In this document: positions 1 to 6,838 of the stretch, piece by piece | Layout: each line of letters begins with the position of its first letter | How positions within the stretch are numbered: position 1 is the first letter of the stretch | Source: Trichosphaerium sp. ATCC 40318 | Lineage: Eukaryota; Protista; Tubulinea | Direction: 5' to 3' | Length of the DNA: 64,000 bases | Assembly (NCBI GenBank): GCA_038496445.1 | Contig: JALMLS010000277.1 | Span: 186,001-250,000 of the forward strand | Notes under the pieces: generated by a model | Seen by the model: only the letters and a program-made list of their open reading frames with translations | Database searches by the model: none | Told to the model about the DNA's origin: nothing | Position numbers and translations under genes: made by a program

Positions 1-1093
<1,093 letters not shown>

Positions 1094-1362
1094 GGTTTAT
1101 GTTGAATTGCTTGTTGCTTGAAAAGCTTGAGAGGCAGTTTGACTAAAAGAAATTACGTTTTTTTTGATGACCATCATATTCATCACAAAAAATATTATTT
1201 TCTTTCACATCCTGCGGTTAAAGTAACCCATTTCACCAACAACCACAAAATATTTAAAAACCCTTTATTGTACAAAGCCTCAATCGCTGTAAAATACAGG
1301 TTGGAAAGAGTTATCCGCTAGTTTACAGGCATTGATCTACTGGGCGAACTTTAGGAAGCTCT

Positions 1363-4300
1363 CTACGCTCGAATAACCTAAAAACAGCCGGTCAATTTTT
1401 TAAATCCATCAAAACAATCAAACACGCACTCTTATCCTTGACTTCTCTGTTATAGCTAACGCCTGAGGTTCGATATCGTGGCAGATAATAACACAAGCCA
1501 AAGTTCCTTGAGGGTTCTGGGACTTGTACATCTTACCGATACGGATCAATAAGACAACGTCAGCCGCGCGTACACTCTATAAGTAACCGTGTGAGTAGTC
1601 CAATAACGCGTACATGAAAAAAAATTCGAGAGAAAAAAACGTGCATCTCGGGTATCACAAAGGAAAGTGTCTTCTCCACTGTGTATTGTATCTATCTCTA
1701 CATTGGAAGGATAGCCGTACCTGTAGATCATATTAAAAACAAAGGAACTACGCGTTCAGAGAAAGAGGTCTACGCACACTGTGCCTTTACTATCGAAGGT
1801 CTTCCAGTGATCTACTCTTGCTCCAGGGAATTCACGAGAGATAGTTTGTTTTAATGGAATAGGATGTCTAGCACCACTAAAAAGAAAAAACAGAGTAAGT
1901 AGCTGTATCAACAAGTAGCGCTTACTTCTCTTGACGAGCTTCTTTTATCTTTTGACGTAACGTCTTAAATTCTTCTGCAATTACTTCGCGTATCATGCTA
2001 CGTAGCTCTGTTTGGAACTCTGCGTTACTCTTAATGAATTCTAGAACCTCTCTCTTGTCCACCATAGGCACTTTAGGCTTTTCTTGTTCAGCAGTGTTCA
2101 TCATGTTACTGAAAGACATTGATGCACGTGGTTCTGCAATAGTGTTGTTAGATTGAGTTATTTAGAGGCGTGTAGTCTTACTTGCTGGTACTCGTGGTGG
2201 TACACCATTTCCGTTGAGGCTGGACATGCGTCTTGGAGGTAGAGGGCTGCTAGAGCCAAACATTGGTGAAGCAGACTCTGCAAAAAAAAACTTTAAAAAA
2301 ACGTTGGGTGTTACTGATTGTTTACCTCTTTGGATGAGGAGGTAGTTCTTGATTACTGGTTCATCTGTAAAGATGTATGGTACACGTTGCAAGTTTTGTA
2401 GAGTAGTAAAGTACTCAGCAACCTCGTAGTACTTTTTAAACTCAATCATCCCGCTGTTGTTAGGCTTTGGATGCTTGTTTTCGATTTCAGTCAATAGTTC
2501 CAAGTAGATCTCCAAGAAAGGTACGCTTGGTGGATTGGCCTATTATTGTAGAGTCAAAACCTCTTGTCTTTAGAGATGTTACTTCATTGTACGTACCGCT
2601 AGCATTTTCTCACGAAAAGATGCTTGATTCTTGTCCATATGCTTCTTGAATGAAAAGAATGCCTTGCGGTCATCTAGAGGTACGATCTAAGAGTCCTATT
2701 AACTTACATGCTGTAACAAAATAAAATTTGAACTTACGCGCCAAGCTTCAGTGAGTTCTTTGACGTGGGTACGTTCTAGTCCGTTTATAATTGCTTTTGC
2801 ACCAGCAAAGTTATTGTACTCTAGCAAGAAAGTGGCTACCTTTACGAATTGTGAGATTATTTTAGCTAGGGCCTCGTTATTTCTACTGCAGCTTGCTATC
2901 TCTGAATTGAACAAGCATTCAATCTACAAAAAAGGTAAACAAATAATACAATGAGGTAGACACGTACTTGCTTGAATCTAGCATTGTACGTTGCAACATT
3001 AGGTGCTTTTTGAGGGTCTTCCCATGCTCTGGCTAGTAATTCATACGGTTTGATTTGACGGAAATCCCTGGGAGGAACATGTCAAAATTCTCAGCAGTTT
3101 TGGAAGAAAAACAAGGGGTTACGCACTGTTCCATAATGAGGCACATTTGTCGCGCTACTTCCCGTGGTTCAAAGTCTGTTATCTTTGCAGTGTTGGATGT
3201 TACACCAGCTGGTGGTTCATGGACTGGAGGAGGTGTTCCGTAAATAGACTTATCTTGTACTTTTTGCTGAAAAAGAAATACATTAGCAACACTCAAAAAA
3301 ATCACGTGATTTTTTCTAAAAATAGTACTTGTTTGTTGATAGCCTTGTTTAGTGCAGTAGCCCAAATGTTATCGAAAGGCTGAATTTCGTTCTGAATGAA
3401 TGTTTTTAATTTGGCGAGTAACTCAGGATCAGCTACAAAGTCATAGAAGTGCTTCTCAACCTACAAGAAAAAAATCAGTAATTTGTTGATAAAATAATTG
3501 GGTTGGATTTCTTTTTGCGGTACCCAATTCTTTATGGCGTTGAAAACACGAAGGCGAATAGGTTTCAACTTCATCTTGTCATACTTTGCCTTTGTTTCTG
3601 CATCGGTTTGCTTTGGTGGAGGTACATTGTACCTTACGATAAGCAAATCAAGTAGCTCCTGTGATGTACAAAACTCACGATAACCAGACAAGAAAGCGAT
3701 GAGGAAGCGTGTATCTACATACAAGAGTAAGCAATACTGCCTCTCCTAAGAGCCAAAGTAGTACCCATAAGCGCTTTATCGTATGTCATACGCTCGATGA
3801 GCTTTAACAATGTTGCAGCTGATACGACATGGATCCCGTCTATCAATTCTAATCGAATATTGGTTGGAGAATCCTTCTCGTAAAATTTGTATCCATCAAC
3901 CTTTTGTAGCTCGAAATCCATGTTTGCCTTTTTAAAAGGTGAGCACGAACGTTCGTTTGTCAGGATTTTTTTGCTTACTTGTTGCTTTTTGAAGCTCTTA
4001 CGCTCTGTGCTTGTCATAAGCTCTGGTGGCTTTGGTGGTGGGTTGTTAGGATCGCGCGGTTCGATGTATTGGGAGAGTTTCCATAGAGTATTATCGTCGT
4101 AGTACGAAAGTCCGTTTAAGTAGTCCTAGAAGGCACTGGATAAGTACAAGTATTGAATAAAAGGAGATAAACTGTACTTGAATAAAAGTTACAGTCTCTA
4201 GACAGTAAGGACTCTGTTGGTATTGTTGTATTTCCCTTATAACATCAGCTTGTTGTCGTCTTTGTAGAAAGTTAACCAATCCATCAGAGGTCTTCTTTTT

Positions 4301-6573
4301 ATGACCGTCTTCGATGAAAGTCAAATCGGTCAAGTAGATTCCTAGCAGGAATTTAGGAGCAGTACTTTACGCAGTAATAAAATAGTGTTTTAGCGTCTCA
4401 TTTTACCTAGATAAGGTACTAGTGGTGGACTGCAACCATGAACAACAGCACGTAGTGTGTGGTAGTTTTGGCTACGCGCTACGAGTTGCTTCAATTCGTC
4501 TAGAATCTTTTGTTGAGAATGTGGAAGGGCCTTAGAGAAAAGTTAGGTATCACTTAACGAAGCCAATCTACAATTTTTTTGAAAACCAGTTCAACTCTAC
4601 ACTATCGACGTACGTGGAATGTTTGACTTAGACGATGAATAGCACTATTGTTAAGACCAGAAACAACTTCGAGTACAGCATTAAAGTTGTTCAGAGCCTT
4701 CAGGCGCATCGCGATATCAATAAAACGCCGTAAAACTTTGACTCTGTCTCTTAGATTTACTGTACCGCATATTTCAGAAGCAACCCAACCGCTCACCTAC
4801 GATTGTGGGGTGAGTTTGTGTTTTTTTGGTTGGGCGGAAGAATAAACGGCAAACCTACTTGATTAAATCGGTGAATCATCTTTGTAATGTTAGGCGCGAG
4901 TTGCTCACGTTGGTCTTTTGACCAAGCCTAAAACAATTGTGAGGATAAAAAGTGGTGGAGGTCTTTTTTAGGTGCTTTTAGGTTTTTTTTTTCACAACGC
5001 ACTGTTTTTAGACATTCCCATGGTTGGATGCTACAAAACATTTTGTGTTCGATGAGAGTGATTTGGCGCGCTACTTCTTGTGCTGGAATATCCATAAAAC
5101 TGAGAGCTAGTGCATACTTTGGTTAACAAGATTCATACGTCGGTCCAAAGTTTTTATTCAAGAAAAGAAAGAAAAACTACTTACTGCCGCTGATGTTTTG
5201 TGGAAGCATAGGTTTTGGCATTTGCTTTGTGAACTGGCTTTTTGTTAGATCCTTCTTAGCCTTTACACCTGTTTCAAGCTAATCTTTAATTAGTATCGTG
5301 TGGAAGCGCTAGTGCATCTAAACGAACAAAAACCTATAAACTGCATAAAAGCAGTTATCACGTGATTTTTTTTCGTGCTTTTTTCAAAATTTTAACGCAA
5401 CCAACGAAATGAGTTTTATGCGCTCAATAATAACAACAAATTGTCTTGTTAAGTACCCTTTTCGTTACACGCTTTTGTACTTTTGATGCAGCGCCCTGAT
5501 ACTTGAAAGACTTGTCTTGTTCAAGTTTTGTAAGCAACGCACGTGTTGCTAATGCAATTTCAGGTTCCTTTGAAAAATCATAAAGGTAGTTCTCTGCCCA
5601 TGTTTTGAACACATTGAAAACACTGAAAAACAATGAGTGAGCAGGTCAGGAAATTATGAAGCAAATTTGCTACAAAAAAAAATAAAGTGATATTGTACCG
5701 TAATGGAATGACATTATCATCTCTTGAGTGCTCTAATGTACTATATGTTAAGGAGAAAATGTATACGTTAACATAAAAGGTAATAAAAGTTGCGTGTTAA
5801 GGATATCTTTGTGCCAAGCCATCAATTAGTTCCAAAGGCGTGCAAAATGAGCGGTAGGTTAGTAAAAACTCGTGCAGTAGGTCTGGGTCTACGTAATGAA
5901 TTCGTATAAGCGCAACAACGAATTTGTACGCGTACCTGCTTGTTTTTCTGTAGTTTTTTCAATCAGTTTGTCAAGTGTAGCAGATTTAATCACTTTGGTC
6001 CTTGTGCCTGTTGTTTTTTGCGAATATTCAATGTTCTGCTCAGTATCTGGCTCACCGAACTTGAATTCGCGCCCAGAAGTGAGTTCTCCTGGCGCTAACA
6101 TTTTTAATTTACTGGTTTGTCTTTTCGGTTTAAAGTTTTCTTTGGACAGCTCTAGTAAGCTCGCGCGATGTACAGGAGCTTTTGGTGACACTTTCAGAAA
6201 CCCGCCTATTGATCATTTAGTTTTTGTTAAACGCCTCTAGTGTCAAAATCAACCAATATTGGTCAAAAATGGTTTGGCAAGTGAAGGCCAGTACTTTGGC
6301 TACTTGTCTAAAAATGATGCTTATAAATTAAAATAAACGTGCTGGAAGGTGGCGGACTTGACGGCGGTGCGGGTGGCTCAATCACCTCCACCGAGGCCCG
6401 CTTACTAACGTCGAACTTCATGTTACGCATCCTCCTAAGACAAAACTTGTTATCGCGATGACGCGCTAGTTGTTGCTGCTAGCGCACTGTAAATTTTGAA
6501 ATTCTTGGTTGATGCTATCCAGGTTTATTGAACAACTCGCTCGCTTTTGACTTGGCGAGCGCGGAATGGACAT
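1363..6573 (-). CDS. Tandem RasGEF (REM+CDC25 x2) with C-terminal DUF3782/DUF1626-like PD-(D/E)XK-fold domain
   Basis: Two REM motifs (FLLTYRSFCTP; FLSGYREFCTS) and two CDC25 domains (EVARQ, LNNFN, PYLG.YLTDLTFIEDG). Splicing at 1925/1877 continues into GARHP..WKTFDSKGTVYGYPSNVEID. The 5' exon structure at 6200-6340 is ambiguous. Confidence 0.88.
5738..5806 (-). other. U12-type (minor spliceosome) AT-AC intron
   Basis: Minus-strand donor ATATCCTTAAC, branch point TTCTCCTTAAC 9 nt before the AC acceptor. The unspliced frame hits TAA and no GT donor is available; splicing restores GLAQR|LEHSRDDNVIPLR. Confidence 0.85.
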
Positions 6574-6838
6574 GATCACCCTTGTTGCGTAGGGACTGTT
6601 ACACGAGTTTTGGTTTGTTTAAAATAGCAGCAAACTGTGTTGGCGGCCAAATGTGATCTCGGAGATTCAAGAAATACTAAATCCAACGTTTTCTCAGATA
6701 CTTTTATTTCTAAGTCGAATATAACTATGGAATAAAACTAAGAGTGTTCGAGTGTACAAGCGTAGCTACATAAGAGCTGTTTATTTTTTTCTTAATTTTC
6801 TTGATTTTTTTTCTTTTCAGTTGTTTTGTTTGTTATAA

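Follow-up and report, generated by a model that had tools for sequence, protein, structure and literature searches.

The window analyzed here, a stretch of 64,000 nucleotides (nt) from the tubulinean protist Trichosphaerium sp. ATCC 40318 (contig JALMLS010000277.1, positions 186,001 to 250,000), carries on its minus strand a gene for a Ras guanine nucleotide exchange factor (RasGEF) whose C-terminal tail is almost certainly a complete eukaryotic homolog of the prokaryotic DUF3782/PDDEXK_10 (DUF1626) proteins. In this tandem RasGEF gene, the last five exons encode the entire module, a long helix followed by a domain with a restriction-endonuclease-like fold. The module constitutes a small eukaryotic family, which occurs as stand-alone proteins of 140 to 230 amino acids (aa) in several eukaryotic lineages and in at least three species is fused to the C terminus of the same tandem RasGEF. 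The explanation that best accommodates these data overall, and that we hold to be probable though by no means secure, is that a eukaryotic PDDEXK_10 module serves the RasGEF as a self-associating, binding end-piece.

Transcription and splicing of the module

Transcript contigs assembled from public RNA runs and placed on positions 1100 to 6800 of the window join the module directly to the Ras activator. The contig X1 (3,554 nt) shows zero differences from the window, and X2 (1,107 nt) is ~99% identical to it; the two originate from different studies, and both continue from the RasGEF exons across the tail. Each splices out 1877-1925, 1721-1777, 1577-1644, 1378-1429, 2134-2181, and 2278-2325, and the last two of these introns join the tail to the RasGEF exons within single contigs. 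A third contig, X3, has partial coverage and confirms 1378-1429, 2134-2181, and 2278-2325, that is, only the last of the four introns that interrupt the module.

Read along the minus strand, the transcript joints place the end of the linker and the long N-terminal helix (EVLEFIKSNAEFQTEL...), the putative counterpart of the DUF3782 helix, in exon 22 (1926-2133), a region that forms one long helix in the AlphaFold2 model of an ortholog. The intron that follows (1877-1925; GTAAGC..AG, 49 nt) contains an in-frame TAA at 1922-1924 and is absent from X1 and X2. Exon 23 (1778-1876), delimited by transcript joints and by a hidden Markov model (HMM) of the archaeal family, supplies a short helix (..ISREFPG) and the first strand (VDHWKTFDSKGTV) of the nuclease fold. 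After an intron of 57 nt (1721-1777; GTGCGT..AG; X1 and X2), exon 24 (1645-1720) encodes YGYPSNVEID, with the motif II Asp, and FLCDTR, with the motif III triad D-T-R in place of E-x-K, as positioned by alignment to the archaeal-profile HMM. The next intron (1577-1644; 68 nt; X1 and X2) is of the GC-AG type (GCACGT..ATAG, with CT..GC as its ends on the plus strand), and reading of the sequence found no in-phase GT donor for it. Exon 25 (1430-1576), again assigned from transcript joints and the archaeal HMM, encodes a helix with the conserved DV..LIRIGKMYK, the strand LACVII, a further helix, and the last strand RIRV. The last intron (1378-1429; GTGCGT..AG, 52 nt) is absent from X1, X2, and X3 and leads to the terminal coding exon part (1363-1377), where the transcript contigs give VIRA and a TAG stop.

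Because 1877-1925 is spliced out, the dominant transcript is not ended by the TAA at 1922, which a preliminary description of this locus had named as a possible end. The four frame pieces quoted in that description all lie on the minus strand and translate exactly as written, and the joints in the transcript contigs fall exactly where it had placed them. A minor isoform that retains this intron and ends at 1922 may exist, since assembled contigs drop rare variants.

The in-frame TAA directly after the helix exon, together with the rare GC donor that one intron requires, might be taken to mean that the tail is an artifact of prokaryotic contamination, chimeric assembly, or an untranslated 3′ region, and that the true protein stops at 1922. 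We assign this a negligible probability. The module is interrupted by four spliceosomal introns, each of which is spliced out in contigs from different studies; the same fusion occurs in two orthologs from other organisms, one of them a single genomic open reading frame (ORF) of 1,077 aa; and 24 of the 26 coding differences between the window and related transcripts are synonymous, including both that fall within the tail. These data show a eukaryotic branch of the family that bears introns, is expressed, and is under purifying selection.

Homology to the DUF3782/PDDEXK_10 family

Pfam, AlphaFold, and fold searches were run on orthologs, which are collinear with the window protein and 44% identical to it overall, and local HMM, hhalign, and BLASTP comparisons were run on the window tail itself. 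The preliminary description had assigned the tail to the DUF3782 plus DUF1626/PDDEXK_10 group of PD-(D/E)XK proteins and proposed a profile check; the assignment is borne out by the ortholog matches, the fold, profile-profile comparison, and identity to archaeal proteins. In an hmmscan against Pfam, PF07788 (PDDEXK_10) ranked first in eight of eight family members (E values of 4.6e-7 to 2.8e-3, profile positions 2-69 of 74), and four of the eight exceeded the curated cutoff of 21.2 bits (P0010, 30.1; P0002, 27.8; P0003, 22.6; P0006, 21.6). Directly upstream of PF07788, the end of PF12644 (DUF3782) matched in three of the eight; these matches (17.5, 19.3, and 12.3 bits) were limited to the last 18 to 29 profile positions and all fell below the cutoff of 24.4. 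Pfam searches with the four single tail exons returned nothing at E values up to 10, the exons being too short. NCBIfam held no family for the module, and the family profile found coiled-coil noise only among PDB sequences.

Prokaryotic relatives were fetched with the degenerate DNA pattern G.[VI]YG[YF]P..[VI][DE].D from one genome per prokaryotic species, which yielded at least 120 loci against ~4 expected by our own estimate. Among the matches listed, nearly all belonged to Thermoproteota, Bathyarchaeia, Nitrososphaerota, and Korarchaeia, with a few bacteria (such as Kuenenia and Dehalococcoidia). The ORFs at these loci encode an L.LL..D.EFRY helix, coiled-coil repeats, ALGARWG, and W..D.EG.VYGYPS.VE.D....L.EVKS, and thus represent the classical family. 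Several archaeal metagenome-assembled genomes in this set (L003-L122; Pyrobaculum, Desulfurococcaceae, Caldarchaeum) give at least two separate loci each, so that the family is multicopy in some archaeal genomes. The archaeal coiled coil ranges from ~60 to >250 residues by way of tandem repeats, as in the repeated segment of L006.

Against an HMM built from 85 complete archaeal ORFs, the spliced tail of the window protein reached 73.2 bits (E = 1e-24, HMM positions 53-153). As the archaeal set had been chosen by way of the motif, we ran two controls: with the motif masked, the window tail scored 24 bits, and 2,000 motif-keeping shuffles scored 23 ± 3 bits with a maximum of 37.6. Comparison of the eukaryotic and archaeal families by hhalign gave a probability of 99.6% (E = 1e-23) over 107 columns, and in BLASTP comparisons with individual archaeal proteins the tail showed 33 to 35% identity over 101 to 117 aa. 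The N-terminal helix matched the archaeal L.LL..D.EFR region at an hhalign probability of 67% (E = 5e-5), a weaker and partly circular result in that the archaeal segments were picked by regular expression; the alignment of one Korarchaeia protein with the tail extends across both helix and domain. The pairing of NGARHP in the tail with the archaeal GARWG, drawn in the preliminary description, is a coincidence that we rejected: NGARHP is not conserved among the eukaryotic members and precedes the profile alignment, which starts ~10 residues later.

Could the likeness be convergence, or could an unrelated, lineage-specific tail match by chance through the short motif VYGYP..VE.D? The lack of any Pfam match to single exons is compatible with this, as is the inflation of scores expected when the archaeal set is fetched with a pattern from the same motif. 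The masked-motif score and the ceiling of the motif-keeping shuffles, far short of the observed value, argue against it, as do the profile-profile alignment and the independent agreement of Pfam, Foldseek, Atlas, and VIA on the same family, and we give the idea practically no credence.

Proteins with PF07788 (PDDEXK_10, formerly DUF1626, COG5493) and PF12644 occur in Thermoproteota, other TACK archaea, Chloroflexota, Cyanobacteria, and Kuenenia. The eukaryotic module probably has the same order of an L.LL..D.EFR-type helix, a coiled coil, and an a-bbb-a-b-a-b domain, and it shares with them a W..D..G.VYG(Y/F)P..VE.D core with the motif II Asp, an acidic motif III, and conserved D, R, and Y residues on the next helix, across the ~105 aa over which identity is measured. 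It differs from them in several respects. Its predicted coiled coil is ~35 to 45 residues long, against 60 to 250 in prokaryotes, and the first helix of its fold is ~8 residues shorter; D-x-R stands for E-x-K, and RIGK.YK, LAC.I, and KCKIK are newly conserved; and in the window gene it bears spliceosomal introns and is joined to a RasGEF of 900 aa. The W, D, and G of the first strand in exon 23 are invariant in 19 of 19 eukaryotic members; at the same positions in prokaryotes, D is found in 85 of 85 and W in 72 of 85, the G being fixed by the search pattern.

Predicted fold

An AlphaFold2 model of P0002:960-1124, computed from a 25-row family alignment that included the window exons, has a predicted local distance difference test score of 89 (>94 in the domain) and consists of a long helix followed by the elements H62-69, E75-82, E92-101, E104-110, H116-132, E137-144, H149-157, and E161-164. 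This ortholog therefore displays the a-bbb-a-b-a-b topology of restriction-endonuclease-like folds, as predicted for DUF1626 by Knizewski et al. (PMC1913061). Foldseek against the AlphaFold database clusters returned a "DUF3782 domain-containing protein" first (E = 8e-10) and Mrr and DUF91 proteins next; against the PDB its matches were weak (E of ~1e-3). A shape search of the ESM Atlas gave PDDEXK_10/DUF3782 clusters in rows 1 to 5. The language-model features of P0008 lay nearest to DUF3782/PDDEXK_10 clusters (score of 0.90), and those of exon 25 alone leaned to PD-(D/E)XK families.

VIA-align gave Z scores of 11.8 and 11.6 to EndoMS/NucS and 10.3 to AF1548. The best solved match is accordingly the C-terminal nuclease domain of NucS/EndoMS (PDB 5gke and 2vld; DUF91/NucS_C), which superimposes over ~100 residues at 2.6 to 3.4 Å and belongs to the family found nearest to DUF1626 in a 2007 meta-profile study. 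NucS nevertheless differs from the module in its ~9% identity, its other N-terminal DNA-binding domain, its canonical D...E-x-K, and its function as a mismatch endonuclease. The N-terminal domain of the RNA polymerase subunit Rpb5, a restriction-endonuclease-like fold in noncatalytic use, is also a structural match (Z of 6 to 7.5); it has no sequence relationship to the module and is a precedent for noncatalytic use only.

A small eukaryotic family

A search of 1.84 billion representatives with exon 25 alone (49 aa) returned 12 matches at E values of <1e-3. Two of these carry the same tail on a tandem RasGEF: P0002 (1,124 aa, from a EukProt transcriptome), which is collinear with the window protein and 44% identical to it over 1,127 aa, and P0007 (1,077 aa), which a 10-kb genomic contig encodes as a single ORF without interruption, so that its copy of the module has no introns. 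The remaining matches are proteins of 139 to 229 aa, or fragments, that contain the module only. A profile search of a 5.8-billion-protein collection, a method that works through shared words and has prokaryotic members out of its reach, returned only 13 members, all of the eukaryote type, and added further stand-alone proteins. When the tail region of P0002 was searched in the protein collection, P0002 was the sole return, and the full-length window protein was absent. The family assembled in this way comprises the window protein and 18 others, and the four exons of the window are collinear with all of these relatives.

In the three neighborhoods examined, the stand-alone genes adjoin INO80, PEX1, BRF1, or a homeobox gene, neighbors that identify these contigs as eukaryotic. 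On two metagenomic eukaryotic contigs (L001, 8001-8510; L002, 8001-8558), the stand-alone module adjoins an INO80-type (DBINO plus SNF2) gene in a shared arrangement suggestive of local synteny. L001 and L002 come from intron-poor organisms with 46 to 53% G+C.

Evolutionary origin

A phylogeny against archaeal homologs places the 19 eukaryotic sequences in one clan (Shimodaira-Hasegawa-like approximate likelihood ratio support of 98) in a tree of 106 columns with 85 archaeal sequences. The window tail is nearest to P0002. This topology is consistent with a single entry into eukaryotes, after which the family diverged into stand-alone forms and was fused once to the tandem RasGEF. The splice joints and homology tests uphold the proposal that a prokaryotic-type nuclease fold, now with spliceosomal introns, sits on a RasGEF. 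The accompanying idea of co-option on a Ras activator is right in that the fusion is real and incomplete in that stand-alone eukaryotic proteins exist too; as these occur in several eukaryotic lineages, the RasGEF fusion appears to be secondary, within an already eukaryotic family.

Between vertical inheritance from the archaeal ancestor of eukaryotes and a single acquisition by horizontal transfer from an archaeal or bacterial prokaryote, we lean toward transfer. Eukaryotic members are few, with the 12 exon 25 matches and no Atlas cluster of at least 50 members; their identity to TACK archaeal proteins is fairly high; the family is patchy and transfer prone among prokaryotes (PMC3424549); and the eukaryotic sequences form a single clan. 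The lean is tempered by the long stem of that clan (1.29 changes per column) and by the bias of the prokaryotic sample, which was selected by pattern, was drawn from among the matches listed, and is wholly archaeal, without Asgard or bacterial sequences. "Archaeal-type" is hence a description of the sampled relatives rather than of a demonstrated donor.

Catalytic motif and function of the module

In the profile alignment, the Asp of NVEID in the window falls on motif II, and C-D-T-R falls on the archaeal E-V-K. Both acids of the PD-(D/E)XK signature are therefore present in the window protein, and the motif III Lys is replaced by Arg. Across the family, motif II is D in 17 of 19 eukaryotic members (E or N in the other two) and in all 85 prokaryotic ones, where it is fixed by the search pattern. 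The motif III acid is D in 13 eukaryotic members, E in 1, and S, N, or Q in 5; in prokaryotes it is E in 84 of 85. The base that follows is R in 14, K in 4, and L in 1 of the eukaryotic proteins, and K (50), T (16), S (11), A (3), or R (3) in the prokaryotic ones, in agreement with an earlier report that Thr is frequent at this position in DUF1626 (PMC1913061). The Arg on the next helix, proposed in the same study as a migrated catalytic or binding residue, is present in 17 of 19 eukaryotic members, with R (64) or K (16) among the 85 prokaryotic sequences.

On the RasGEF, the module may act as a self-associating end-piece that binds a ligand or partner rather than primarily as a DNA-cutting enzyme, a proposition on which we find the evidence evenly poised. 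It draws on the change of E-x-K to D-x-R in most eukaryotic members, with the acid gone altogether in five, and on the strong constraint on fold-defining residues and on the eukaryote-specific surfaces RIGK.YK, LAC.I, and KCKIK. In the proposed mechanism, the helix, which we modeled as a single chain, would oligomerize; the nuclease fold would bind nucleic acid or a stand-alone paralog; and the contacts of helix and fold together would cluster or localize both exchange factor domains.

Several observations weigh against a noncatalytic reading. The window protein keeps the motif II Asp, the motif III Asp, and the conserved helix Arg, and a full D...(D/N)-x-K is present in four of the eukaryotic members. 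The preliminary description was correct that ExK has become DxR, and its further step, that the module is inactive, is not established: ~40% of the sampled prokaryotic family is without the Lys, so that D-x-R is no proof of inactivity. The missing Lys weakens the case for an active nuclease and leaves homology untouched; "noncatalytic" is a label suggested by residue patterns.

These same residues lend some substance to the rival view that the tail is an active nuclease or a specific nucleic-acid-binding sensor, which would link Ras activation to DNA or RNA that it detects or cleaves or, alternatively, target the exchange factor to chromatin or RNA granules. An acidic motif III accompanies the motif II Asp in the window and in 13 to 14 of the 19 eukaryotic members, a basic R or K comes next in 18 of 19, the helix Arg singled out as a candidate in PMC1913061 is retained, and the solved folds nearest to it belong to real nucleases (EndoMS/NucS, Can2/Card1, MspJI). 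We nonetheless judge this view unlikely. The motif III acid and, less often, the motif II Asp have been replaced within the eukaryotic clade, which is dominated by the changes of E to D and of K to R; DUF1626 is without documented nuclease activity, its function being given as "unknown" in PMC3424549; and why a cytoplasmic Ras activator would need to cut nucleic acid is not obvious. In the most far-reaching version, a TACK-archaeal-type coiled-coil nuclease entered eukaryotes once and, in one protist lineage, was coupled to a double RasGEF, to which it supplies an input that senses or cleaves nucleic acid. We regard this as improbable; if it were true, Ras signaling would be switched on directly by DNA or RNA that is foreign or out of place, and the protein would be an innate-immunity-like sensor of an undescribed kind. 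The gene neighborhoods of ~110 archaeal loci revealed no recurrent partner (the largest neighbor cluster had 6 members), and gene context thus gives no functional hint.

Gene model and neighboring features

The window is eukaryotic in character, with ~38% G+C and many introns of 44 to 180 nt. The coding region of the RasGEF gene (1363-6430, minus strand) comprises 26 coding exons for a protein of ~1,128 aa, with the start ATG at 6430 and the TAG stop at 1363-1365; the transcript contigs reach ~1256 in the 3′ untranslated region (UTR) and ~6540 in the 5′ UTR. The gene model combines the joints listed in the transcript contigs with frame-consistent GT-AG introns and matches the spacing and lengths of the X1 pieces. 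Its product has the order REM-RasGEF-REM-RasGEF, followed by a Ser/Pro-rich low-complexity linker of ~60 aa, the helix of ~45 residues, and the alpha/beta domain of ~105 aa.

Pfam searches on single exons identified two units each of REM (PF00618) and RasGEF (PF00617), all on the minus strand. The first REM domain (~5457-5888; RasGEF_N, E = 5e-3) precedes the first catalytic RasGEF domain (4193-5106; E = 1.3e-19 and 2.5e-4), and the second REM domain (~3524-3927; RasGEF_N, E = 1.1e-14) precedes the second catalytic domain (2326-3266, exons 16 to 20; E = 1e-9 and 3.6e-4). P0002 and P0007 have the tandem arrangement in common. Across the tandem (2326-5888), the second unit scores much below the first against Pfam and may be a degenerate or regulatory copy. 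The protein resembles multidomain RasGEFs of amoebae and other protists in its REM and CDC25-homology domains, and C-terminal accessory domains are common in that class; it differs from them in having two complete REM-RasGEF units in tandem and a terminal nuclease-fold module.

The first REM region contains an AT-AC intron (5738-5806, minus strand; ATATCC...AC, 69 nt) that is absent from the X1, X2, and X3 contigs; splicing of a U12-type intron at this site is thus real. A probable second GC-AG intron (6206-6342, minus strand), with the same donor GCACGT as at 1577-1644, was deduced from the joint 6203/6342 of a further contig, X4, which leaves one letter between, and from the reading frame, rather than from X1. 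The 5′ UTR has an intron at 6435-6487 (minus strand). An upstream ATG at 6573 (minus strand) opens a spliced frame that stops at a TAA just past the main ATG at 6430 and hence forms a short upstream ORF that overlaps with the start. Immediately downstream of the RasGEF gene lies a gene for an E2 ubiquitin-conjugating enzyme (1-1093, minus strand) with several short introns; its start at ~1093 is only ~160 nt beyond the end of the RasGEF transcript at 1256.

Significance

DUF1626/PDDEXK_10 and DUF3782 have been described as prokaryotic only (PMC1913061, PMC3424549, PMC4786415). Our searches of the literature on RasGEF plus nuclease and on the family names found no description of a eukaryotic member or of a RasGEF fusion; the statement in the preliminary description that no described example is known thus holds for the publications searched, none of which concerned a nuclease-fold module on a RasGEF. 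Precomputed Pfam annotation already tags P0002 with PF07788, and the novelty therefore lies in recognizing and documenting the branch rather than in its detectability. What emerges is a bona fide eukaryotic branch of a family that has been presented as prokaryotic and of "unknown" function, and, in at least three species, a recurrent fusion of its domain to a Ras activator. It makes a clean example of eukaryotes domesticating a prokaryotic protein with a nuclease fold. It also provides a functional handle on an uncharacterized family, in the form of a Ras signaling partner and stand-alone paralogs that can be studied in culturable protists.

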